From Takakia lepidozioides (taxonomy: Eukaryota; Plantae; Bryophyta): 64,000 nt of DNA. The stretch is from NCBI GenBank assembly GCA_030704615.1, contig CM060731.1, positions 32,612,001 to 32,676,000 of the forward strand. Reading direction: 5' to 3'. Position numbers and translations under genes: made by a program. Of the stretch, positions 12,361 to 39,999 are shown piece after piece. Positions within the stretch are counted from its first letter, which is position 1, and each line of letters begins with the position of its first letter. Below the pieces are notes generated by a model. The model had not been told where the DNA came from and made no database searches. It was given only the letters and a program-made list of their open reading frames with translations.

Positions 12361-13669
12361 CAATTTCACCTACTGACCTTGTCCAGGCAGCAATCACAGC
12401 CGCTTGAGCAGCCAAATGTGCAGGTGCAGGAGGTGGGGCACCAGTACCTGAACCCATCTCAATTTGAGCAGATTTCTTGCCACCACTGCCGAATTGCATT
12501 CACTCGACACAACACTTCTGACCGCACTCCTTACTTCCCTACTCTCTCATTCTCTCGTAGGAAACATGATTTGCATGCAGGACCCACAAATGTAGCTTGG
12601 CTATGAACTTGCAGCCTTCTCACATACTGAAGCCTACAACTCAAGACAACAGGATCATAGTTGGTAAGTGTTATGAATGCGAAACTGAGGGAGACATGCA
12701 AGATGAAAGATATGATGCGCAATGGCCCCCTGCCACAATCGCAACGACAACATGCACACACTCTGCACGCCAGTAAAGCTCCCAAACAATGTGCAAACTC
12801 AAGTGTTCAAGTAGCAAGGAGCTCCGAGCTCCGTGAGAGAGAAGCTAAAAGCACATGAGACTTGCTCTCGTGCCGCAATCCTGACCCTCCTATCTTGGAT
12901 GCCAAAATTCATAACCATAATGGAAAAATCTGGAAGATTGCTCATTCAAGACATGTTGGTCAGGTGGGTCTGGGACCAGAAAGTTGGGCCCAATTGATCA
13001 AAATATGCAAAGACCGCAAGCAAAAATCCAAAAAGAAATGCTTCAAACAGGCCGTATGGACGCTTAGGGGTTAAGCCTTAAATGAGAGGAGGTTGAGCAC
13101 AAAGGCATATTCCAAGTATTCCAAAAGATTTTGGAAATATGCTCTGTAAATCCAAAATGTGCGGTAAGAAATATGAAACTATCTGAAAACTGTGCTCACG
13201 CAAAAAAAAATCATGAAACTAATCGTCCAAAGCTTAACTCGCGTGAGCACAAAGACCCACAAATATATATGCTAGAACTCAAAGATCAGCGCACGTTGTG
13301 GCATTTGGTAACATTGTGTGTAGATCATCTCCAAGAACCACACAGAAATCAGCTTTCGCTGGCTAAACGCAAATGGTTTCAAGCTCCTTATATATGTTTA
13401 AGATTCTATTTAGACACCATGGAGACCCTATTACCGTAGAAAGACCCTATATCCGTCTATTATATGCATTTCTGTTGACCCCTATAACCGTGGATCCCGC
13501 TCATGGGGCAATGTTTGTGCTCTGGCCATTTGTGCTCACGCGGTACCAACCCCCAATGACGAGCACCCTTTTGGTGGGCACACTTAAAAAGAGGGCATAC
13601 CCTCATGGATGAGGGTATAACTTTTGACCCCCAATCATCTATAGGGATGAATTATACGCATATATATAC

Positions 13670-14074
13670 GCCTCTCATTTTAAGATAATAGGGTCTTCAA
13701 TGGGCACGGGCGATGTGGCCGGTGGGCCCCGCACACGGACGCCCGGCTCCCCAGCACCCCGCCCGCCCCGCCCCGTCCGCCGCTGCGCGCGGTCGCCCAA
13801 CCACGGGCGCGGCTGCAGCAACCGCGCCCGCGCCCCCGTCCGCCGCGTGGCCAGTCCCCCGCCCATGAGTCCGCTGCCCTCCAGTTTGCCAGTCGGCTGC
13901 CCAGCAGTCTGCCCGCCAGTCCGGTGCTGGCCAGTCCGCTGCCCAGCAGTCTGCCAGTCCGCCAGTCTGCCCGCCAGTCCGCTGGCCAGTCCCCTGCCAT
14001 CCAGTCCGCTGACGGCGCAGGATCGCCACCGTCCATTCCCATAACCCATCCGAGCCCTCCATTTTTAGGGCTGC
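13670..14074 (+). repeat. Left TIR of MULE (GC-rich, ~405 bp)
   Basis: Near-identical reverse complement of 26469-26862 apart from small indels. Confidence 0.95.
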
Positions 14075-15822
14075 GAAAATGGCAATGATCTTCCCACCAA
14101 ATCCCGGCCGCTCTCTTTTGACGGCTGTTTGTTGTCCGATGTTGCGGTAGGCGTTTCCATGCACGCGACTGTTCCTCTTTTGCGCTCATGATGATGATGA
14201 AGCGCGTGCTTGAACATGGTAAGACTGTCTGGGCACTACAGCCACCATCGTGCATATGCTTCCACTATTTTTGCCTTCTTGTTGTGCTTTCGGGAACCTT
14301 CGTTTTATGGTTTGGTTCTATGTCATAAATATGGAAAATGCGGACATCTGTCGTCGATAACGTCCTCTGCTTGTGATCCGTCATGATACGTTTAGCCCCT
14401 TCATACTGCATCCCTCATGAGAGCCTTCACAAGTTTAGTTCGTTAAAGGAACCCATGGGTAACATGGGCGCGAAAATGGTGGAAGCGTATGCACATGAGG
14501 GCGTGTATTGCAGATTTCGTATCGCACGATGGGACTGTTTATGTGACCAAGTATAGCGGCTTGCATCCGTCGTGCATAAGTTGTGGAAAAGGGTGGAGAA
14601 TCTGAAGAAACCCAGCTTTGTGATGGATCCACATGGTATTATATAAGGGATGGCAGCACAAAAAAATAATTTTCGAGTCGTCAAGGAACACCATCCAGTC
14701 GTAAGGTCCTCAAACATCCACACGCACCTGCTGAATGCAGATGTCTGAGCCACGACGGGAGTAGGTGCAGAATCGGTACATTGTCGCATTTGCCAGGAGA
14801 CAGACCAGGCTGAGACAATTGCATCTGCAAATGCGCGTGGATGTTTGAGGTTCGTTGTGTCGCGAGTCTGTTCATAGTGGGTCTGCTGGCCCGTCAGTGC
14901 TCCGGATATTCCCCTTATCGCGTGCATAACAGTCAGTTTGGAGGCGGTCTGCTGGAAGTCCGTCTGTTGGGATATCAGTCTGTCACACTTGTGAATTTGT
15001 CAATCTGTTGTGTCGGAAGTCTGTTGCACTAAGTCTGTTTGACTTCTTATTTTCCCTCCCGTCAGTCTTTTGGCTTGTTCTCCCGCCAGTCTGCCGAAAC
15101 GTCCGTCTGCTAGACAGTTCTCCTCTATGGATATCAGTCTGTTGGACTGTGCATGCATCAGTCTGTTGTGCCACGAGTCTGTTCGCAATGGGTGTGTTCG
15201 ACTTTCCTATTCTCCCCTTACTTTCTTTTGTCTTCATTCCGCTGGCAGGGAAGTGCCTCCAATATGAAGCCGCTTCGCCTCAGCAAAGCAAATAGTCCGC
15301 TGGACTGGCGGTCCGCTGGACTCTCGGCCCGATGAGAAATGAGTCTGTTGCACTTGCGAGGACCGTGGATGAATTAAGTACGATGCGTTCGTTCGGTGGA
15401 CGTACTCAATGCGATGACGGTGGATAGTTGGCGCCTGTGAAATCGCGGCACGTTGGCAGTGCCATGCCCGCTTTCCCCCTTCTACTTCTACTTTCTTCTC
15501 ATGTTCCATGTGCGATCGACTCCATTCTCTTCGCGTATGTTTCTTCGCACTGTTTTGCACTGTTTTGTTTTCCTCTTTGCGTTTCCATCACCGTAACGAA
15601 AGACGACCGTTCTTCCCCAGGTGTGGAGAGTCGCGGTGAGCCGCGAAGCGTCGCAAACACGCTCGCCTTCGTAACAACTCAAAGTTCATCGGCTCGGTGA
15701 GGTTCTCACTTGCTGTGGTGTTTTCATTCCATTCTGTGTCATCTTCTTGCTTAGGGTGAGTCTTTTCATAGGACTTCTATCTGTCGCTCATTGTCCTTGC
15801 ACCTTCGTTTCATTCTGCAGCG

Positions 15823-18800
15823 ATGGAGGATGCTTGTGAAAAGGGTGGAGCGGACTGGGTGGATTTTGTGCACCAAACCAGACTGAAGAAGGAGCGAAGG
15901 TACTAGTACTCACCAGACGAGTTTGATCATAAAATAGTGGAAGCATTTGTAGACCTCCGCGCCCGGAAGCCCAAAAACTCGAATTGGCAGAAGGACAAGC
16001 TCTTCTGTCTCTTCTGTGAAGAGGTTATCAAGGACAAAATCCAACTAAATCGGCATTGTGTTGACACGGGTTGCAAGGAGACTGTTGCAATGATTCCACG
16101 GGATTTCAAGCCTTGGCCGATACTGAAAGAAATGTCGATTGTCAAAGATGCCACAATGCGCTTGCGCGGATCAGTGCTTGACCCCTGCACTTTGGAATTA
16201 GACGAAGTGCGCGCACGGTATGGCATCCATTGTGGTGGCCCGTCATGGAGGATTTGCAAGTGCAGGGAACGCCGGACGCTCCCAGAAAACGTAAACTGAG
16301 TGATGGGGCCCAAAAGAAGGAGAGGCAAAAAAAGGAGAAGGCTGCAAGGTCTGCTGGCGAGGCAAAGGCAAAATCCACGCAACAGACTGAACACCGTCCT
16401 GGGCGGCAGACCCACACCATCAAAACTGATACTGAAAATGAATCTGCTTTGGGCCTGGAAAGGGTGACAAGTCCAGTGGACATTGACTTGCCTGACCAGA
16501 CTCGGCAGTAGACTCACACAAATATCGCGACCCATGCCATCGGTTTAGGGTCAAAACCAAAAACTCAATAGAGCACTGAAGGGCCAGTTTGCCCTGGCAC
16601 ATTGCGCCTCGTTGACTTTGGGCTTTTCCCACCTGAGTGCCCACCAATTGGGGATCCAGACTTCTTCCGTTATTTCTACAGAGTTGCCCAGTCAGGTCTG
16701 CTACGTACATTCATCCGACAGGCGGAACAGAACTGGTTGAACAGCTTTGAAGATGAAGATGACGATGATGAAGTAGAGGAGGTAATGGTCAGTCTGACCG
16801 TCCAGTCTGTTCTCTGTGTTATTTGAGTCCATCATCGGGGGGTCACGTTGCCTATTCAGTCTGGTCAGTCCGCTGGCTCACTCCGCTCGTCAGTTAGTCT
16901 GTTTTATATCGCTACATTACTTACTGAGTCCGTTTGTCAGTCCACTGGTATAGTCTACTAGTTGCCTCCACCCTACGTACGCACGTTACAGTCTGCTGGT
17001 CTGTGAGTCTAGTCCGCTGCATGAGGTGAATATAGAATCCACGTCCATGTTCCTGATGTCCAAGTTCTCTGCCGTGTACCAGGATGAACGTGTTTATATT
17101 CGTAGGGCCATTCAGGCTTGGCGGATACCTAGCAATGATGCTCCTTTACAAGCGACTGCAGTGCGTGTGGAAGTGGACCGCGTGCGAGAGTACATATTAT
17201 TGAAGTATCATGGGTCATCTGCTGCTATAGCGGCATTACATATTCAAGACGCGTCGGGGAGGAATGCATTTGGGACAGGCGAGTCTGCCATCCAGCAGTC
17301 TCCCATTCAACAGGCCGTCATCCAGCAGACTCCCGTTCAGCAGCCTGTTATCCAGCAGACTCCAACGGAGCAGACTCCCAACGAGCAGTCTGTCATCCTG
17401 CAGACTCCTCTCCAGGAGCCCATCATGCAGCCCATGCCAATGGGAAGTCCTGTCATCCAACAGACTGCGGACCAGCAGACTGACCAGCAGACTGCCTTTC
17501 TCTCACATAGCACGGCGCTTTTTGCAGTTTGGCGATCGCCATCACCGGTAATTCGACCCGGAGCTGAAGACCTCACACTTCCCCGGCTTAGGGTGGGAGA
17601 AATTAATCCCCATTTGGATTGGCATAATGAGCTCCACCGGATTGTTGCGGACCGCCGGTGGTCATTTGTACCCTTTCATTATTCCATGGAGTTTTCTATT
17701 GAGGAAGCCAACCATGTTCTAGAAGCCGCCTCTGCTGTTGCCATTGAAGCCACAAGCGACCAAAATGCGCCGCCTCTACTTGTGCAGCTGATTCTCATGG
17801 ATGACCCACGGCCTGAAGACCTCAGACATATGCCTATGGCACATCCAACCTTTGGGGTGTGAAGAAAGCACTTGTTCGGATTGACTGAGGAGGACTTTGA
17901 GCGCATGGCAGCTTTCTTCCTACAACACAGATAGATGCAATTTGGCAATTTCCGCTCATACAACAAGTTGATGAAGGATCTGCATAGTTTGAGGATGGAC
18001 TTACTCCATGGAACAAACCATTCACAGAAGTTTGTGGTGGATGATGCATTGCACTAGTTTGCATTGGTGATGGAGCGAGCAGTATTCGACATTATTTTGC
18101 AGAATCCCAATGTCTTCAAAGTCTTGTGGTGTGGGATCCCAACTGAAGACCGCATCGGCGCCATTGCTCATCTCGATGGAGCATGCCTGTGCCGGCAAAT
18201 CAAGGACATTGGCCTCGTCGGAAATCTCTTGGAAGGTAAAATGTTATGGGCAACTTTCGTGTTTCAGCTCAATTTCTTTTGCCAACTTTTTTACAAGTTC
18301 ACATTTGCATAAACATGTGTTACAGGGCGAGTTGATCTGGGAGACAAGCAAGTGCAGGCTGCTTTCGACTCTTTTGCCAGAGGTGCAAGGGACATTGTCC
18401 TGGCTTTACAAGGAGTTCGGGAGACTGTCCAGCAGACTGGCCACAAGAATGTCGAACAACATATTCCCCACGACACATGTGGGCAGACTGCCCAAGTCAT
18501 GGAGACCGAGCATGTGCACCAGACCGTCCCGGGTAATAGGCCGGATCACTCCCAGCAGACTGCCCCGTACACACATACTCAGTATGTGCAAACAATACTG
18601 AGCGGGCAGCGAACTTTGCAGACTTTGCAGCAGACTGGAGAACAGACCGACGAATCCAGCCAGCAGATTGCCTCTCAGCAGACTGTGCAGCACACTGGTG
18701 AACCCACTCAGCAGATGGCCGAGCAGACTATCTAGGAGACTAACAGCCAGTCTGTTCCCTGGATTGTGCAACAGACTCGGATGCACTGGCCTCACCGGGA

Positions 18801-21454
18801 CCCTGTGGACGAATTTCTGCTGAGTTCCCAACAACATGTTTTTGGATCTGCCTGTATGAGTGTTTTGACCGAGTCCACTTTTCCCCAGGCACATTCACTG
18901 ACGACGTCATCAGGTCACCGGTAAAGCATTCTTATCCAGCTCCCCGTGGTCTGTCTTCTATGACCTTCCAGCTTAGTCCCATTTTCGTGCGCTCAGTGAC
19001 GAAAGCGAAAGCCATAGATGAGTCTTACGTGATGACCGAACTCAATCTGGGAACACAAAACCATATCATAGATCGTATAGAAGAGTCTGAGGAAGTAATT
19101 GCTGGTGGGTCTTCCATACATATGTTGATGTTTCCCAAGTCCATGGAGATCCGAACACCCAGCCGGTTGTCCACCAGACTGACCAGCATACTGAACAGTG
19201 GACACATGGAATGACTGCCGAGCAACCTGTGGCGGGGCAGCATACTGTCTTCATTGATGAGCAGACTGAACCGCAGACTAACCAACAGACTGCACAGGTC
19301 ACAGATGGAAGGATTGACCAGGATGGCTTGGAGCGGCAGACTGCACAGCTCAGCTCTGACTGCACAATTCAGACTGCACGGCCTGACCAGCACACTGCAC
19401 ACTTCACAGAGGGAAGGACTGACGACCAACCTGCCACCGAGCACATTGCCCACATTGAAGAAGAGACTGAACCGCAGAGTTGCCAGCAGACTGCACAGTT
19501 CACAGACGAAAGGACTGACGAAGAACCGGCGGCCGAACAACCTGCCCACATTGAGCAACAGACTGAACATGCTGGCAGGCACACTGACAAGGAACCACAT
19601 GCAGCGCAGACACCGTCTGGTATAGCGCTGGATTACATGGAGTCTGCTCCCTTACCCCTTGGGCAGGTTGTGTCATTTCCTCTTTCAGGACTATTATTTA
19701 TATTTTAGCACATTGTGAAATTGGGCTAATTCGTCATTTTGCTCGGTATCCTCACAGGATGTTTGTCCCTCCATCGGCAGACTATCTACTTCTGAGGACA
19801 TGACATCTTCTGCCCATGATGCAAACGTGGGATCGACAACCAAGAAAGGTGTGGGGTGAGCACGCCTACTGATGCGCGGGTCAGTTCTACGCATGCAACC
19901 CACGAAGCTGCAAAGACAGGTCCATCAAGTATAAACAAACCTGCTGACCAGCCTCTGTTGCGAAGTAGGGCGGCAGCGCTGCGTTTGTCTGCTCTATCCA
20001 GCCCGCCTACAGCTGTCCCTGCTTCCTAGGGGAGAGGCAAAGCCAAGAAGCGGACTGTCGTGGACCATGCTGAGGAGGTCGAAGAGGGTCCGAGTACCAA
20101 GAGACCGGCGAAGAAAAAGTCTGGCGTCTTTATGAACAAGAACCGCAAGCTGGCCTTGGACATGGACAAAGATGTGGGTCGTTTCCTGGAGCAGCACATG
20201 TGAGTACTGTGCTCAGTCTCCTCGTCTGTCTTTGTCGTTAAGTGCTTTGCGCTCTGTTGTGGTCAGTCTGCACGTTGGTCAGTTTGCTGCTGGTTTCATC
20301 ATTGTCTGTTGTGGTTAGTCTTGTCAGTCTGATGAATTGTTCAGCCTGTAGAGTGTTTGGTACCGTGTTGACGTCAGTCTGTTCAGTACATGAGGCTTCC
20401 CGAAGGATGGTCTGCTCTGTGCAGGATGGGTGCTCGGTTTGGCAAAGCACATGCTCTGCACGTGAAGGCGGGTAATTCCATGCTGATGTTTTTTGAAGGG
20501 GACCCACGGTTTGAATGCGGACTGTCACGGGATGACATAAAGGCGCTCCAGAAGGTTGAGTCGGAGTGCACAGATAGACTCCTAGAGCTGTGGTGTCGAT
20601 TCTATGAGAAGTTGGTTGAGGCTGCGTTCACCAACACTATTGCTGTTCTTCCAACGTCGACGTGGACGGTGTTGAAGTCATTGGGGGTGAGGCAACATGA
20701 AAGCCTTCTGGAGATCTTGAAAGGTTGCCTCAGCACTGAACGACTGGGTAATGACTTGAAAGAGTGCGATTTCATTTTGGTGCCGATTGGGGACGAGTAA
20801 GAACTCTTCTGAGTCTGCTGAGACTGTCTCCTGAGTCATAGTCTGGTTTCGCAGTGTCGTCTTGACTCTGAGCGATTAAGTTGACCTCTGTATTTGTGCA
20901 GTGGACTGGGTTTGAAGATTGAGTCTGCTGAGTGCTGAGTCTGCTGAGTGGTCGGTCTACTAAGTATCAGTCTGCTGAGTCTGCCCATCATGATTGTGCA
21001 ATGACGTCATGTTGTTTGATACCATTGCAGGGGGCACTGGAGTGTTTGTATCATCGACCTCCGCAAGGGCTATTACACTCACCTGAACTCTATGAGGGAC
21101 TCGCATAAATGTCCCTTTGTTCTAGGGTGGATTTGGAAGCTTCATGCTGAGTGCTTAGGGTACTCGATGGACTCACCAGAGTGGCATGAGATTGTCCAAG
21201 CATTTCAGTTCCACGCGCCTGATGTGCCCCAACAACCATTCAGCTGGGAGTGTGGCTTTTACGTCATGTCATTCATTCAAGTGTTTTATGAGTGGGTAAA
21301 AGTCAGAGCAAATGTCTCCAAGAGTGCAAAGCCAGAGAGAGGAACACCTTTCACGAAGGACTAGTTTACTTTCAAGTTTGCACTTGGGCAGCGAATGCAG
21401 TGTGCCCAGTATATCGTGCGGGGGTTGGACAATGTAGAGAAACTGCTCTCATGA
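15823..21454 (+). pseudogene. MULE accessory gene: N-terminal C2HC-like finger, Gln/Thr-rich repeats, C-terminal Ulp1-like (peptidase C48) domain; multi-exon, disabled by nonsense mutations
   Basis: FCLFC-x12-H-x5-C near 16000. C-terminal DFILVPIGDE|GHWSVCIIDL...HLNS...VPQQPFSWECGFYVM across intron 20797-21030. In-frame stops at 15904, 16509, 16569, 17860, 18733 and 21362, and a frameshift near 16240. May be more than one gene. Confidence 0.75.
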
Positions 21455-22091
21455 GTATGATGTACTTGTCCTGTGAAGTCTATGTACCGAAATAAAAATT
21501 GCGAGTCTTTCCGCTTACTATTCCAGTGGTGATGAGCACTTTTGTGTACTGTGGGTGCTGGCATGTTTTGTAATGTTGTCACTAAACTCAATGGACACAA
21601 TGGTGTCAATTTTTCCATGCACTATGCACCCGAGTCTGCTGAGCTTGAATGTGCGAGCAATTGCTGCCGAGGCTAGGACTGGTGGGTCTGGTACCTAGTC
21701 TGGTAGGCACCATGTCCATGAGTCCGCTGGGACGCTGGATTGGCATGAGTCGTTAGGGAGGTAGTCCACTGGAGCCTGTCCATTTTGAGTCTGCTGTTGT
21801 GGATGAGTCTGCTTGAGACTTAGTCTGTCCAGCAGTCTGTTCGAAGAGTTGCAGGGATGAGGTGGAAGTGTGGTGAGCAGACTTTTGGAGTGGGCAGCAG
21901 ACTGACCAGCAGACTGGCTTACTGGCGCTCGCAGTCTGTTGACTGTGACTCTGTTGGGAGACTGCGTGAGTCCGTTGGGAGACTATGCTTGGGAGACTAC
22001 GTGGGAGTCAGTTGGGAGACTGGAAGAGTCCGTTGGGAGACTGTGCATTAGTCCATTGCGGACTTGTATTTCAGAAAGGGACAATGCTACC

Positions 22092-22279
22092 AGAGGAATT
22101 GCAGACTTATATTGTCTTCTTCGTGACACCTACACGACATGAAACCTTGTCTCTTTTCGAGGAATTACAGACTTATATTGTCTTCTCGACGTGAAACCTT
22201 GTCTCTTTTCGAGGCATTGCAGACTTATATTGTCTTCTTCGTGACATCTACACAACCTGAAACCTTGCGAATTTTCGAG
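22092..22279. repeat. Imperfect 3-copy tandem repeat (~53-67 bp) at the transposase 3' end
   Basis: gagg(a/c)att(g/a)cagacttatattgtcttct and gaaaccttg each occur three times. Confidence 0.85.
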
Positions 22280-25200
22280 TATATATGTGCTGTAGGTGCA
22301 GGTACAGACACCCTCTTGCTGGTTCTCCGCAAAACCCTAGGCCGGGTTTTCCAGGCCTCCACGAAATCTCGTCTCCTTTTAAAAGACATGTTGTTGTTGT
22401 CGTTCAGAGGACGGAAAGCCTTCGCTGCCGCAGGGTGCAACATTCCAGTCGCACTTTTCGCCAGGATATCAACGAGTTGCCCTCTGCACATATGAAGAGC
22501 AGATCGGGCATGTGCCTCCAGGTATTTGTCATCACCTACAATGCGAAGTATGTCCGCGAATTCTTGTTCCATTGAGGCTGAGACCTCCAGAGGTGCCTCG
22601 TCGTAGAGGAAGTCATCCGGATGATGTCTTTCCATGAACTGATTGGATTCGTCGTTGCCACCGGAATCATTGCCCAAGAGCAAGTTAGGTAATCCTCCAT
22701 GAATGGTTCTCAGTGCCGTGCCACAAACGCGCACAAAGAGGCCATCCTGCAGGTCAGGGTGAAGCATCTTCAGGACACGGACCTGATGCTTGCATAAGTT
22801 TCCCTTCATTGCCCATGGGCACGTGCAACAACCCCAATCGCAATCAGGATTGTAAACAATGTATGTTGTGCCGGGGTGGTTGCTGCTGAGAACGTAGGCT
22901 GGTTCACCAGGACCCAAGGGAAGAGTAACACTCTCAGCAGGAATGTCTCGTGCCGCAAGTATAGAACTGGATATGTACTTTTCGTGTTTGTCATTTCTTA
23001 TGAACCCATGGGTCTTCAAATGGATTGCGTACCAGTAGTGTGTTAGCACACGGCCAGTGAGTTCCCATATAAGCCATAGAAGGCTTAAGAACAAAATAAG
23101 AGCATTTCTTTACATAAAAGAACATCACCAAAGCAGGGTTACGGACTGATATTTGGCAGCTTATACAAGAGGGTGTAATCGGCTGCCCTATTTTGCACAT
23201 CAAGTTACTTTATTGACACCATGTTTTTTGCCCCATGATCTGTTTTAGATCTGGGGCTGGTGTGTAACTTCAATGACAGGGTAGAGTAATATTCCCACCT
23301 CTCATTCCATGCCCCAAGACCAAGTTCTATGTCTGGGGTAGGGAAATCATTACCATAACAGGCTGTAATCAGATTTACATGCCATGCAATCATCCATAGG
23401 AAACACAAAGAATCTGAATTGCTCATCCCATCAGGCCTGCAGGTTACTTTGGTATTATTTATCCTAAAGCAACTCAAATACAATGCCTGAATCATTCTCT
23501 TCACATCTACCAATGTCTTGCCGTTTTGGAAAATAGGTAAACATTCAAGGGCATATAACCAAGGACCAGATTTGGCCACAAAAGATCCATCCATATCAGT
23601 TTGGCGTGGTATCAAGTGTCCTAAAGTAACCAGCTTCTAAAAGAGGCTAAGTTTCCAATGCTTGTACATTCAAGAGCACTGTCTGGTCATGAAAACAGGT
23701 CTGCCCTACATTGTAGCATGTTACCAGATCTCTTTAAAGCCATCAGCTTGTCATATCATTGCTCCATTGTCACATCGGTATGCCGTAGGGAACAAGAGAT
23801 AGTCGCCCTAATGATTGTCATAAAGTAACAATCAGGAAATCTTATATCAGACTTTTAGTGTCTTGCTTTTCCCCATGGCAAGTCTTGCCTTCAGATTTCC
23901 ATGGTATGCCTCAATGCTTGCGTTTGTGTCTTGGCTCGCATGAGGGACATGGCGGGCTGCTGTACACCACATTGCTATTTTGGGCTTCCAGTACTGTTCG
24001 ATATAGTCAAGAAATTCATGTCCTTTCGGGTATTTTGACCTCATACGACGGATTCTCCTTGCCACCCACCGAATCGCTCTTTTCTCGTTGCGTGGTCCCC
24101 CTCTACAGTACATGAGGTCTCCCATATCCTTCAACAAATTTACAGCAGTCACCGGATCCTTCGTTTTCTTGCATGATTGCTTCACCCATGCCTTGCGGAC
24201 ATGCCAAAGGCAGAGGAAAATGAGTACTCCTTAAAAAACAATTCTGCACAACACACATGGTACACATTAGAATCTTAGGATCGGACTGCAATGGTGGACT
24301 GCCGGAGTGGACTGTAACAGCGACCTGTATCAGCGGGCAGAGCCACTGGACTCGCCCAGTGGACAGTACAATGCCATAACGTTGATGTGCTGGAATAACC
24401 CCATTGGACTACACAGTGGACTTCCCCTAGCTAGGACTGGGGCAGCAGACTGCATCAGCGGACTGCCCCATTGGACTACCACAGCGGACTGCCGAGCGGA
24501 CTTGCCAGGGACTGCCAAGTGGACTTGGCAGCGGACGGCCGACCCCAGGGACTTCTGAGTGGACTTGGCAGCGGACTTGGCAGCGGACTGTCGAGCGGAC
24601 TTGCCGGGGACTGCCAGCGGACTTGCCAGGGGACTGATGAGCGGATTTGACAGCAGACTACCAGTGGATTTGCCCAGCGAACTGCCATCGGGTTTCGCCA
24701 CAGGAGTCTGCCAGTGGACTGTAGCAATGGACTGCTGCAGTGGACCTCGACAATGGACCGGTGCTGTGGACCAACAGACTTACCGAATAGCGTTGATTTC
24801 TGCTTCGGCATCGTCCACAGTGAAGGCATTGGGTCGCCAACTTGGCAAATCTGCGAGGAGTGAATCGCGCAAGGCTCTCATCCACGGAACCAGGTCTCTT
24901 GTCCGATTCCTCGCGGATAGGATATAGGCAACTGGTATACCGTTCAACCACTCGTCGAAGACCATCAACGTGTACAATGGGAACTGTTGGAATGCACAAT
25001 GTAAGATGGTCAGAGCATGCAAATTCCGCTCAGTTCTGCACGAGAAGACTTCATAAGAGTGATGAGGTCTGCAACGGTTCACAATGGGTCTGCCCCTCGG
25101 TCTTCCGCAACGTACACATGAAAACATACAGAAAGGGTCAACACACCAAATTTTATGTGAATGTTGCATGGTACTATGCTATCATGCTCGTACAAGTCCA

Positions 25201-26324
25201 TGGAATCGTTCGAATAGTACCTTGTCATGATTTGTCCCAAAGGTTGCATCACATGCAACGATACGGTCATGTCCTAGTTCCAACATTCGTCGTTTTTGCC
25301 ATGGAGTCTGTATGCCAATAGTGAATGTCAAATCTCCATCAAAATGCTCGAATGTTGGCTCTAATTTCTCCTCTTGATAGAAAAAAACGGACACAGGATT
25401 CTGGTCTCTCCACATGCGCACACTCTTTGCATCATCGGCGTGTTTTTTGAAGGTTTGCCACGCACGTTTCTCGGCAAGGTTGCGAACATCTTGCTCCAAC
25501 AAGAAATCATCGCGGGTCCATACATCGCCCAAGCCGGTGTTGTTTATCACGTGCTCTTTATGCTCCATCATGATTTGGGCGACCGACAGGCCTCGGCACA
25601 AACACTCGACGACCCAGGCTTTCAATTCCTCGCTAATATGTGGTGCATAGGCGTGGTGGGTGTTCCTGAACTCTGCGGACTTCCCATGCGAGGGTTTCCC
25701 TTTGCGCATCTGTATGCTCCATGTTGTTGTAGTACGTGAGGACACAGATGTCAGGGGCGAGATAGCATTGCTGGACCTTGAAACAGCATTGGCAACCACG
25801 TTTGTAAGACTCTCCATACTCCGACTTCTTTCTCCTTGGGCCTTTATGAGGGCAAGATGTTCCAGCACCCACAAGAGGTCATCCACGCTTCTGTTTTGGA
25901 TCCTCCACTATTGCCTTGTTGGTGCGCTTGTCATCAGGACCGTAGCAGCATTGATACCTGGACAGAAAATTCTAAAATTGATATCCAACGACTTGAGGAA
26001 GCATAAAATCAGAGAACTCGTGAAACAAAAAATGGCTTTTCGCGAGCCGGGTTCCACTTTAGAATGGACATTCACCCAAAACTGAGTGGGGTAGTCCTCC
26101 AAACTCTCCTCTCCCAGGACGAAGTCACCAACTCTATCCCAAGGTATGCAGGCCTTTTCAACATTCGCTCGCACACCCATAAACCCATATTGCGTCTCAC
26201 TCTTCCAATGGAGATTCTTCTTGTTGAAGGGTCCTGGTTTTGCTGTTTGCAAACATTGTCGAAGAGGCCGTATAAGCGGGCTTTCCGTGATCAATATATC
26301 ATCGGGTTTTGCTTCCACGTCCAT
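22225..26324 (-). pseudogene. MULE transposase with SWIM zinc finger (multi-exon, disabled)
   Basis: IPWDRVGDFVLGEE, YQCCYGPDD, KRGCQCCF, FTIGIQTPWQ; DDE residues in VACDATFGTN / FTVDDAEAE / ASIEAYH; CLWH; SWIM CTC...NLCKH. Stops at 25879-25881 and 24231-24233, frameshift near 25700, insertion ~23080-23855. Confidence 0.9.
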
Positions 26325-26468
26325 GCCCTATATAGTACAAAGGACACGCTTCTGAACATGCAAGAAACGCGCCGCATTACAGGACACGATCGACAACGTG
26401 CCATGAGAACAATGCGCACGTTCGCGGCTGCTGGCAAGTGGCAGGCGGCAGAGATGCAGGTTTGAATT

Positions 26469-26862
26469 GCAGCCCTAAAAATGGAGGGCTCGGATGGGTT
26501 ATGGGAATGGACGGTGGCGATCCTGCGCCGTCAGCAGACTGGATGGCAGGGGACTGGTCAGCGGACTCGCCGGCAGACTGACAGACTGCTGGGCACCGGA
26601 CTGGCGGACTGGCAGACTGCTGGGCAGCCGACTGGCCAGCAGCGGACTGGCAGACTGGAGGGCAGCGGACTCATGGGCGGGGACTGGCCGCGCGGCGGAC
26701 GGGGGCGCGGGCGCGGTTGCTGTAGCCGCGCCCGCGGCTGGGCGACCGCGCGCAGCGGCGGGCGGGGCGGGCGGGGTGCTGGGAGCCGGGCGTCCGTGCG
26801 CGGGGCCCACCGGCCACATCGCACGTGCCCATTGAAGACCCTATTATCTTAAAATGAGAGGC
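26469..26862 (-). repeat. Right TIR of MULE
   Basis: Ends ...CCCTATTATCTTAAAATGAGAGGC followed by the TSD. Confidence 0.95.
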
Positions 26863-28367
26863 TATATATACATCCATGTATAGTCAAAAGTGTAGGCAAT
26901 TTTGGAGATTGAATCTGCCCCAATTTGTAAATGTATTCCGAAATTGCATGGTAAAAAAGATTTGACCACAAACTCCAAGTATCAATTTGAATTTTCCAAG
27001 ACAAAGGCCCTCCATAATCTGATTATATGGCACCTAAATGACTGTATCCCAAAATCAGATCAAGCATAAGAATTACATTTGTGGTCACCACCATTGGACC
27101 AAGGGCTCCAACCACTCAATGACAGATTTATAAAACTCGTCTATTCTGTTTATTCATATGGACAATTCACAATCCTTTCATCCTCACTTCCATAAGCAAT
27201 CTCCTCTCTCCCTCAGATCATTTGGTCTTGGTATGATTCTCAGTCTCATCTCTCATGCCAACCGAGTAGCTCTCCCCCTTACCTCTGAGTCGCTCTACCA
27301 GGGCCTCTGGGTCCCCCCGGACATCGTGGAGGCAGGCTGAAGGGGTGACGACAAGGCAAAAGTACAAATGGAAACAAATGCAAATCTTTGCCTAAATATT
27401 TGTTAGAATTCTGAATTTCATTTTGGGGGTAGTAGTTCATCATTCAAGGAACACTTTCACTGCAACAATTGTGATTCCAAGGAAATTTCGGACCCCCCCT
27501 AAATTACATGTCATTTGAGCTTTACGGTGTGTTTTGACCCCCCCTGTTTTTCCATACAAAACAACCTTATCAAGATTTTGTTTGAAATTTTGGGGCAACA
27601 TGCTTTAGGTGCCACATAATTGGAATCTGGATGGGTCTTGTGAGGAAAAAATATATTGTCGATCTAATTTCCTGGTCAAACCATTTTTCCACTCTAAATT
27701 TGGAGTGTACCCCAAATTTTGGGCTTGCAAATTTCTTATAATCTTCCAAACGACACGGTGGAATGAGCTGAAATTTTCCCATAAGCTGGATGAAGTAGGT
27801 AGCCTCCCATTCATACGGTTCATCCCTGTGGATGTTAGTTTCCTGAGAGATATACGCTCCTCCATGAGGGTATGTCCTGTTTTGGAAGGGGCCCACCAAA
27901 ACTGCCTCGTCCATTAGGGGTTAATTGGAAACATAGGAAAAATAGAAACTTCAAAATTCAAGGGTCATCTGAATTTCAAACCCCTCATATCCAAACCTTA
28001 ACTTCTTATGATCTTCTTATTAGTCAGGTTTCATAGATGGTGGCATATCTGTCCTAGATTTATGTTCTGACTGTTCTTCGTAGCCTGGTTCGTAGCAGCT
28101 GGTTTCTTGCATCAGTTAACCTTGGCTAGTTCCTTTGCTTTCCGTTGTGTCGATCTGGGAGCTTCCCACTTAGGGTGTTAAACAAAGGCATGTTGGACTG
28201 GTATTGAATTTTTAACATACCAGCCGGGTCCGGGGCTTGATTTTTTTGAAATGTGAACACTCGTATGGCCCTAGGTATTGCAGAACAAGGATTTCTGAAA
28301 TACAATACTGGTATAAATATTGCTTTTTGCAAGAACCAGTATGTGGTATCAATAATAGGGTTCGGAC

Positions 28368-37858: not shown

Positions 37859-38799
37859 GTAACATCAAGGTGTCATCTTTTTGAGAAGTAACGGATGTTA
37901 CCAGTCTGCTTTAATTGTATGATATGAGATCAATCTTGTCACAGTCTGCCACTAATTTTCTGTTTGTCCATGTCACTGGTCTTCGAACTGATCATTGTGA
38001 ATAGATCTCAACATAATGCAGATTGCGGGTCTATTTGTTGTGTGGGAGGAGTAATCGTGTACTAAATTATAGGATAACTGAATAAGTTAGAGTTGTGGAC
38101 TAGTACTTAAGTTGCCAGGTTTAGGGGACCCCTACGCAGAGATATAGAAGGGAACCCTTGATTTGGAAAATCCTTTACCCCTTGTGGTTTTATGCTACAT
38201 ATAACCTTGAGATCGTCACCACAGCCCCTGATGCCGTTGGGTATGCTATCTCCTTATCCAGGCTGAACAGGTGCTTCAGTAGGGAAGATATAGCAATAAT
38301 GCAAGCGAGCATGCAATCTCGGATGGAATGGTATGCAGGCTTAGGTCAGTCAATTTTCCCCCACCCCATCTTGAGAGTTCACTTTTGAGATCCTTGACAC
38401 TCTAATTGGTCTTACATCATCAAAGCTTTAAGTGATGATTAGTGTGGTCACCTTTAAGATGCCTAGTGGAAACTGGCAGGTCTTCTCAACTTCAACATGC
38501 CGTCATGGAATTTGATTAAGCATTGAAAGGAATTAACGTCAGACAAGAGCCAGGGCAATCCAGAAAAAATTGGGCCTTGTGTCTCATAGCTAAGTACCAT
38601 CACCATCATTTTACCAAGAGACTACTCATCACTACACAGCAATGATTAGCAGTCTAATTGAAATTGAGTCTATAATAGGGGATTGGGGATTTATCATGCC
38701 GCCGGCAACTAGCAAATTACCGTCAGATCGGACTCCTACTATTGTTTTCCTTTCAGTAGAACTCAGTGGTCACTTCTGTTCTTCACAAAGGAGCCACTA

Positions 38800-39999
38800 G
38801 GAGTCTGCTGGAGGAGGGTTTGCCCAATCCGCTCGTCGGTCTGCTAGAGGGTCTTCCTGTCGGCTAGAAGGTTGGAGTCGGTTTGTTGGAGAGTCTGCCC
38901 AGTCTGCTAGAAGATCCGCCACAATAAATGAACAAGGACTTAGAAAAATTTCAGAATCTGGGCGGTGACTGGCAGGTGGGCTTATGAGCTCACCCCATAC
39001 TGGCGGGCCCATAGGTGCATTCAAGTCGCTAATATCAAAAAATGACAGGCGGGGCCATGAAGGCAGAAGGAAAGAGGTTATTTTCTCCTCTCTTTGTGAT
39101 TAAGCATGGGCCTGATTAAGGGAGTATATTTTTGTTGATTTGAAAAATTATTTTTAGAAGATGGCACATAGAGATCATAAGTGGGTTTTATGAGTGGTGT
39201 TGCTTAGAGTCCCTATGCCAACCGAAATGCTGATGTGATGGGTGAAGTTCCCCCCTAAAGTGCCCCCATGGATCCATTTGTGTAACTGGAATCGATGGAT
39301 GTATCTTCTGAGTTATGGATGAAATAATGCGCCGAGACATCGCATCACCATTATTCTCACCCAACCTTTTTCTTAGAACGTTTCTCTGGCATCATTTTTT
39401 GGAGCTTCCTTGTACATAGATTATCATGTTCTTTCTGTGCAGATGTCTCAAATTTGCATTAATCTTCAATTTTCTTCTTGAGCCATGCAATGGCCGCCAG
39501 GTTGCGGATTGCTAAGCTCCACTGTAGAAAATCTCAAACAGTTGTGTGTGATCAATCTGATAAGAGAAAACAAGTGTAAAATCCTTGTGACAGCAGAGCG
39601 GACTAGGCACACCCTCCTCCAGCAGACCTCCAACAGAGCGGACTGGGCACACCCTCGAGCCGAACGGACTTGCAGACCCTTCGACAAAAAATTTAGTAAC
39701 ACACATTACTGCCAGGGTACAACCCCACGATTTGAACACCAAACGTGTTCATTGCTCTTAACCACCACACTACCCGCCACTCCCGCCACTTTCTGCCAAC
39801 CCCTACAATAACTGATGCTGTATGTGCATATTGTGGGCCCCAGCAGACGAGCTTGCGGGGCAGACCCAGCAGCAGACTGGCCGGGTAGGGAGGATGGCCG
39901 GTAGGTGCTCCCACCCTCCGCGACCCCCTATACAACACGCGGGCCCGCCACAGCCACACGCGCGGGCAATCAACACACTAATATTGTTCAATGAGAAGC
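38800..39999. mobile_element. Truncated relic of a related MULE family (one terminus, no coding capacity)
   Basis: 39941-39999 (gggccc...gccaca...aatgagaagc) resembles the right terminus of the large MULE. Inverted pair gtctgctggaggagggt..gcc.a.tccgctc at ~38803 and ~39596-39627. Same AGTCTG/CAGACT motif. Confidence 0.6.

Follow-up and report, generated by a model that had tools for sequence, protein, structure and literature searches.

Experimental evidence that transposons protect themselves in a sequence-specific manner is known only from Arabidopsis, where VANC, TnpA and the AtMu1c transposase provide the examples. In En/Spm (CACTA) elements, 12-bp sub-terminal repeats lie inverted at both ends and an element-encoded regulator, TnpA, counteracts methylation-based silencing. 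The KI-MULEs and Kaonashi elements of seed plants are Mutator-like elements (MULEs) with a Peptidase_C48 gene beside the transposase gene, and we know of no description of them in which a short motif saturates the whole element. In the case of VANC21, encoded by VANDAL21 (Hiun), the target is the 9-nt motif YAGTATTAY, which forms high-density arrays of a single orientation in upstream regions and introns (PMC5735166, Hosaka et al. 2017). The target arrays gain and lose tandem units rapidly and contain C-type and T-type variants of the motif, and VANC itself carries tandem peptide motifs (PMC5735166; PMC10398659, Sasaki et al. 2023). VANC is reported to be dicot-specific and its structure has been solved (PDB 9LNK; PMC13547354). 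The AtMu1c transposase alone binds motifs in the terminal inverted repeats (TIRs), and hypomethylates and activates both cognate and related non-autonomous copies (10.64898/2026.08.24.746577, Sasaki et al. 2026 preprint). In the literature, we found no motif-saturated MULEs in mosses or in any plant beyond the Arabidopsis work. Here, we describe a 13,193-bp MULE located in a 64,000-nt stretch of the genome of the moss Takakia lepidozioides (contig CM060731.1, positions 32,612,001 to 32,676,000 of the forward strand; this whole stretch is called the window). The element is saturated with a short word, AGTC(C/T)G, whose copies may be binding sites for one of its own proteins.

The element extends from position 13670 to position 26862, as read from its TIRs and target site duplication (TSD) within the window; the borders proposed in a first-pass annotation of the same letters, 13840-26680, proved too narrow. 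Judged by its sequence it is a MULE, because it combines a TSD, long TIRs and a transposase with MULE-like signatures. The TSD is a perfect 9-bp repeat, TATATATAC, within the 9-11 bp characteristic of MULEs, and the TIRs, as in long-TIR MULEs, measure about 405 bp and consist of blocks that are 84-98% complementary. Between the TIRs lie two convergent genes: a SWIM-bearing transposase on the minus strand and, on the plus strand, an accessory gene, hereafter the helper, which encodes a candidate zinc finger, an orphan domain and a Ulp1-type (C48) protease domain. The core exons of the transposase contain, by eye, the signatures DATF, DDAEAEINAI (DxxxAI) and CLWH (CxWH). Its SWIM finger scored 18.2 bits against a Pfam cut-off of 19.6, and the atlas look-alikes also carry SWIM. 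In the exon-by-exon search no single exon piece reached PF10551, the Pfam MULE model, and a transposase exon found nothing in a metagenome scan or in a search of PDB sequences. We also noticed a pair of 54-nt inverted repeats (13569-13622 and 27848-27901, 81% complementary) that flanks the MULE together with about 1 kb on its right side. An older, small element with inverted repeats may have been the site into which the MULE jumped.

How specific is the word to this element? Counting the core AGTC(C/T)G on both strands, and taking the remaining 50.8 kb of the window as background, there are 117 sites in the element (9.1/kb, the same 117 for the narrower and the wider borders) and 37 outside it (0.72/kb). 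This amounts to a 12-fold enrichment over the flanks and, when the element is resampled with a first-order Markov model (13.7 ± 3.5 sites, maximum 25 in 300 resamples), to an 8-fold enrichment lying about 29 standard deviations above the mean. In an unbiased comparison of k-mers inside and outside the element, the word ranks first at k = 6, 7, 8 and 9. Its extended consensus is cAGTC(T/C)G(C/T)TG, 9-10 nt in length, and the 9-mer AGTCYGYTG occurs 50 times inside and 5 times outside. The word is also sharp. Information is limited to positions -1 to +8, with about 0.05 bit in the 20 positions on each side, and only the variants AGTCTG and AGTCCG are enriched 10-fold or more, the other one-mismatch variants standing at 0.6-3 times background with the sole exception of AGACTG (6-fold), which overlaps the reverse complement of the word (CAGTCTG is a near-palindrome). 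The dense word is therefore specific to the element relative to its 50.8 kb of flanking DNA. In this respect the first-pass annotation holds: it had claimed saturation with AGTC(C/T)G and scarcity in the flanking host genes, had suggested the k-mer comparison as a check, and had listed clusters in the TIRs, the spacer, the introns at 16782-17082, about 20200-20394 and 20797-21030, the 3′ region and the transposase intron, all of which are present. The coordinates, word counts and local densities are collected in Table 1.

Table 1. Features of the moss MULE, with the number and local density of AGTC(C/T)G words in each
Feature	Positions	Strand	Words (density)	Basis and remarks
TSD, left copy, TATATATAC	13661-13669	.		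Read from sequence; same letters as 26863-26871
Left TIR	13670-14074	+	9 (TIRs 22-25/kb)	405 bp; words in inner part, 13868-14008, all inward
Spacer / 5′ region of helper gene	14075-15821	+	11	Words at 14865-15347, all +; no recognisable open reading frame
Helper exon: candidate C2HC zinc finger, basic stretch, acidic tail	15822-16781	+		Spliced contig starts at 15822; donor at about 16781
Stops in window copy, finger exon	15904, 16509, 16569	+
Intron A	16782-17082	+	8 sense (27/kb)	GT..AG
Helper exon: first Gln-Gln-Thr (QQT) region, then conserved orphan domain	17083-18235	+	7 antisense, 2 sense (17282-17495)	Spliced contigs
Stops in window copy, orphan-domain exon	17860, 17932, 18055	+
Two short introns (122 and 91 nt)			0
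Helper exon: second QQT region	18358-18920	+	8 antisense, in frame	Spliced contigs
Intron C	18921-19297	+	4 antisense, in phase with frame of next exon	GT..AG joint in sister transcript
Helper exon: third QQT region	19298-19666	+	4 antisense	Spliced contigs
Helper exon: basic stretch resembling a nuclear localisation signal (NLS)	19758-20199	+		Spliced contigs
Intron E (inferred)	20200-20394	+	3 sense (16/kb)	GTGAGT..AG, phase kept; contig coverage nil
Two Ulp1/Peptidase_C48 exons	20395-21364	+	First exon 2.5/kb; last exon 0	Joint 20796>21031
Intron F, between the C48 exons	20797-21030	+	6 sense (26/kb)
Convergent 3′ region of both genes	21365-22227	.	17 (20/kb)	Mostly + on helper side, - beside transposase stop codon
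Transposase gene	22228-26330	-	Core exons 1-2/kb	Exons word-poor (about 1-2/kb)
Last transposase exon, SWIM-type finger	22228-23109	-	0
Large transposase intron (inferred)	24231-24779	-	11 sense, 1 antisense (12 sites, 22/kb)	GTAAGT donor, poly-T..AAG acceptor
Right TIR	26469-26862	-	10 (TIRs 22-25/kb)	Words pointing inward
TSD, right copy, TATATATAC	26863-26871	.		Read from sequence
Flanks			0.4-0.9/kb

The model of the helper gene comes from contigs of two public runs, presumed to be RNA, that are 95-99% identical to the window. Contigs of sister copies skip five segments with GT..AG borders (16779>17081, 18233>18356, 18919>19297, 19663>19755 and 20796>21031) and cover the intervening exons. 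Five canonical skips of intron size have hardly any other explanation, and the contig sequences therefore indicate that sister copies of this element family are transcribed and spliced. One contig, from run X2, joins 19662 to 21027 (GT..AG, 1364 nt), an alternative splice that would drop the exon with the NLS-like stretch and the first C48 exon. In addition, a spliced sister contig extends more than 250 nt upstream of 15822 and includes an ATG; this upstream sequence is absent from the window even when 3 mismatches are allowed, so the first helper exon is missing from the window copy or has diverged in it.

From its N-terminus, the predicted helper consists of the finger, a basic stretch with an acidic tail, a first Gln/Thr repeat, the conserved middle domain (about 240 residues), a second and a third Gln/Thr repeat exon, an exon with the NLS-like stretch, and the C48 domain. 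The finger is a single candidate with the pattern CPFC-x12-H-x5-C (CxxC-x12-H-x5-C). The C48 domain is recognised by Pfam PF02902 (47.9 bits, E 1.9e-12) and its exons are nearly free of words. Searches with the helper, made exon by exon or with the intact open reading frames (ORFs) of sister copies, led to few relatives. An exhaustive search of 1.84 billion representative proteins with the middle domain of about 240 residues found only the sister protein P0001 itself, and no atlas look-alike of this domain was found. P0001, 95% identical, was likewise the one match when relatives of an accessory exon were sought, and look-ups of the exact protein returned only the sister genomic contig L001. 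Word-based searches for relatives of the zinc-finger exon and of the SWIM exon found nothing. Among solved structures, a PDB sequence search with the N-terminal and middle parts of the helper gave matches at chance level only, and single-sequence AlphaFold models were poor, with a predicted local distance difference test score (pLDDT) of 51 for the middle domain and 35 for the zinc-finger region. A third, VANC-like gene in the spacer was also considered and rejected, as no third gene was detected among the ORFs of the spacer or of the 3′ region.

The words are not restricted to non-coding DNA. About 30 antisense sites lie in the repeat-rich exons of the helper, which are covered by spliced contigs, and all 23 of the antisense sites within 17083-19666 start at codon phase 0. 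Each of them is therefore read as CAG-ACT, that is Gln-Thr, typically within xQQTx. Gln-Thr pairs are encoded as CAG-ACT in 21 of 26 cases, against 24% expected if the Gln and Thr codons were combined at the frequencies at which this gene uses them (p = 1.6e-9), and the peptide context around these pairs varies from site to site. Such an in-phase codon bias, together with the varied peptide context, argues that what is kept is the DNA word and not the peptide; likewise, since the exonic copies are antisense, the sense motif of the RNA is not what is kept. By these sequence comparisons, it is the DNA word that is conserved in the QQT exons. The contrast between the exons of folded domains, which are word-free, and the flexible exons, in which words are embedded in frame, suggests that selection has favoured as many double-stranded words as these proteins tolerate.

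What might such a word be for? We give about an even chance to the reading that a protein encoded by the element binds the words in double-stranded DNA and that they constitute an array specific to the family. The putative reader would be either the helper, with its weak single candidate finger, orphan domain and Ulp1 domain, or the transposase, which must have a DNA-binding part of its own. Because the AtMu1c transposase binds its TIRs and causes hypomethylation unaided, the role of reader need not fall to the accessory protein. Through such binding, active copies could recognise all the members of the family along their whole length and in trans. The most plausible use, by analogy with VANC, TnpA and the AtMu1c transposase, would be to keep these members transcriptionally open against silencing, and a SUMO protease tethered to DNA would be a plausible effector. 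That binding would counteract silencing is likewise suggested by analogy with those systems.

The window holds a second element that bears the word. At 38674-39932 there is an inverted-repeat element of about 1.25 kb with ends that read ATAGGGG..., whose best arms, 38803-38841 and 39589-39627, are 85% complementary. It carries 8 words, on the plus strand in the left arm and on the minus strand in the right arm, pointing inward as they do in the TIRs of the MULE. Its termini differ from those of the MULE and no clean TSD was seen by eye. This small element is perhaps a non-autonomous relative with the same word.

Could the words serve only the mechanics of transposition, as sub-terminal repeats bound by the transposase for end recognition and synapsis, the internal copies being spill-over from the TIRs? 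The 9-10 inverted, inward-pointing words of both TIRs fit this proposal, and the sub-terminal repeats of Ac and En/Spm have a comparable inverted layout; yet 84% of the sites are internal, outside the TIRs, and the outermost 198 bp or so of each TIR, where end recognition would be expected, is word-free (the outer part of the left TIR is GC-rich). Spill-over would not explain why exonic sites are kept at the DNA level either. The small element at 38.7-39.9 kb can be cited on both sides, as it has the word in both arms, in agreement with the binding of MULE transposases to TIR motifs common to non-autonomous relatives (10.64898/2026.08.24.746577), but has it without the ends of the MULE. Taken together, the absence of the word from the outermost 198 bp or so and its presence in the small element lean, as far as sequence can tell, slightly away from a purely mechanical transposase site, and we regard a role in transposition only as unlikely.

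No reader at all would be needed if the word had spread neutrally: as a slippage-prone unit akin to CAG/CTG repeats, it would have multiplied by replication slippage, unequal exchange and local duplication. Tandem Repeats Finder places 48 of the 117 sites within arrays, the commonest spacings between sites are 12, 8 and 15 nt, copies of the element differ by whole units, and the words of any one array all point the same way, as expected from tandem duplication; the remaining 69 sites, on the contrary, are dispersed and have unrelated flanks. Neutral spread also fits poorly with an information profile so sharp that near-miss variants are not enriched, with the occurrence of the word on both strands in at least 10 separate compartments, and with its presence in a second element that has unrelated ends. 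Finally, words are kept out of domain exons yet lie in frame within flexible ones, a pattern that speaks for two selective forces in balance. A neutral origin is in our opinion improbable.

The orientation of the words deserves separate consideration. In the spacer, introns A, E and F and the transposase intron, 39 words are in sense and 1 in antisense with respect to the gene, and orientation on the 3′ side likewise follows each gene. In the large transposase intron the words are mostly of the AGTCCG form, in arrays of 12 and 24 nt. The rule is broken by intron C, with 1 sense and 4 antisense words. All this evidence comes from only about 6-8 independent compartments, and tandem duplication by itself keeps the orientation of an array uniform. 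Given the few compartments, array duplication and the exception of intron C, the orientation rule is descriptive and no proof of a strand-specific function. The first-pass annotation, which stated that the word follows the sense strand in introns, was thus right for four of the five word-bearing introns, though these represent few independent events, and wrong for intron C. Of the introns at issue, three are backed by spliced contigs, whereas that at about 20200-20394 and the transposase intron are inferred only. Its placing of the word in non-coding clusters stands, but not the confinement to non-coding DNA, as the antisense sites of the accessory exons had been overlooked.

In the convergent 3′ region, a 52-bp unit is present twice (22135-22238, 94% identical), spanning the last transposase codons and the stop codon; each unit contains one word in the sense orientation of the transposase. 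The clusters upstream of both genes, in the TIRs and the spacer, might also be taken to recruit a host factor, a transcription factor or a chromatin protein, in place of an element-encoded reader. A promoter would hardly require saturation of the whole element, and the flanking host genes contain the word no more often than chance would give (0.4-0.9/kb), which makes this explanation quite remote. That the word acts in RNA, as a splicing site or a site for an RNA-binding protein in introns and untranslated regions (UTRs), would account for the sense bias, for the UTR-side orientation in each gene and for the overlap of a word with the GTAAGT donor of the transposase intron, but it is most improbable, given that about 30 exonic or intron-C copies are antisense and hence a different RNA sequence, that the TIRs are also filled with the word, that the two short introns (122 and 91 nt) are spliced without it, and that so few compartments bear on orientation.

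Comparison with sister copies gives a picture of how the arrays and the genes change. L001 is a 2.9-kb genomic contig, 96.1% identical to the window, in which uninterrupted ORFs of 334 and 411 residues span the breaks of the window copy. Whenever the two copies differ by an indel of at least 12 nt, the difference is a gain or loss of word units. In intron A the sister copy has two additional units, of 21 and 13 nt; in the first QQT exon the indel measures 12 nt and preserves the frame. The third QQT exon varies too, being 12 nt shorter at 19505 in a sister transcript. Substitutions tell a different kind of change. L001 and the window copy are separated by 54 of them; 39 are C>T or G>A on the window side, and 1 runs the other way. 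By context, the C>T changes affect 3.4% of CG, 4.2% of CHG and 1.75% of CHH sites. The six stops that this decay has produced in the 2.8-kb overlap are three TGG>TAG, two CAG>TAG and one CGA>TGA. To these are added 1-nt deletions at 16244 and, relative to a sister transcript, at 19852, and a stop at 18733, where sister copies have C. By its sequence, then, the window copy is dead, with the C>T decay expected of methylated or silenced DNA. The possibility that the T-form of the word is a deaminated C-form was rejected, as the intact sister has 20 T-form and 6 C-form words and no shared site differs. Aside from these comparisons, the observed/expected ratio of CpG is higher in the element (0.70) than in the gene-bearing flanks (0.41), despite the C>T decay of this copy.

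Several points weigh against the reading of the words as sites for an element-encoded, silencing-resistant system. The zinc finger has zf-Di19 as its best Pfam match, with an E value of 0.15, below every threshold, and a single finger is insufficient alone to specify 9-10 nt. When the C48 domain (21031-21364) is compared with Ulp1 (1euv) and SENP2 (1tgz), the His, the oxyanion Gln and the Cys are kept but the catalytic Asp is replaced by Asn, which makes protease activity uncertain. Neither Pfam nor PDB gave any match of an accessory exon or spacer ORF to a VANC/MAIN-type plant-mobile-domain protein, the plant-mobile-domain model and the VANC21 sequence included. The C>T decay of the window copy is the look of a silenced copy, and a word rich in CG and CHG sites is an odd choice for an element that avoids methylation. 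Codon identity in the QQT repeats may be partly inherited from one duplicated unit, and the coding sites have a somewhat longer consensus. Lastly, substitutions in exons affect 4 of 96 word positions and 36 of 2005 other positions, so that words are not better conserved, although this is a weak test in which one of the two copies is decaying neutrally.

A more elaborate proposal can be built on the binding-site reading, and we put it forward only tentatively, as rather doubtful. This early-diverging moss might possess a VANC-independent anti-silencing system, in which the helper would be recruited by the private word to the whole element, its own coding parts included, and would strip away SUMO-dependent silencing, while sister families would use other words. 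TGTAACCC and YAGACC may be such words of sister MULE families. If this were true, the same DNA layout would have been reached with an unrelated helper, meaning that the conflict with silencing gives rise to private address labels again and again, and a SUMO-protease-type domain would be linked to self-protection. It would also be a clear case of a DNA-level signal imposed on coding sequence, with Gln-Thr codons fixed by the word. The system is directly testable, since the word, the proteins that might read it and a sister copy both intact and expressed are now defined.

Compared with VANDAL21 and VANC21, the moss element is alike in being a member of the Mutator superfamily with an extra gene, and in having a word of about 9 nt that is dense and of uniform orientation in upstream regions and introns. 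Array size changes among copies in both, C-type and T-type variants of the word coexist, and tandem peptide motifs make up variable regions of the accessory protein. The moss word differs in being GC-rich, with CG and CHG sites, and in filling the long TIRs and coding exons as well, whereas VANC21 motifs are mainly non-coding. The first-pass annotation had likened the locus to the VANDAL anti-silencing system. The sharp, dense and uniformly oriented word, the turnover of arrays, the Ulp1/C48 accessory gene and its expression speak for that comparison, while any likeness to VANC21 or to a plant-mobile domain fails; at best, the sequence makes the element an analogue of VANDAL/VANC in its DNA layout, membership being refuted at the sequence level. 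The same annotation held that VANDALs encode a Ulp1-like protein, which was not confirmed, with no occurrence of 'Ulp1' in PMC5735166 or PMC13547354. AtMu1c resembles the moss element as a MULE whose motif-sharing, non-autonomous relatives can be compared with the 38.7-39.9 kb element, but AtMu1 has no accessory gene and its sites are reported at the TIRs only, in contrast to the internal words and large helper gene of the moss element. En/Spm shares the multiple short motifs, inverted in both sub-terminal regions; it belongs to another superfamily and has its motifs only at the ends, not in introns or exons, and the moss element has no TnpA-like protein. KI-MULEs and Kaonashi, finally, are alike as MULEs with a Peptidase_C48 gene adjoining the transposase gene, whereas in the moss element a candidate zinc finger and an orphan domain form one protein with the protease, which has Asn in place of the catalytic Asp.

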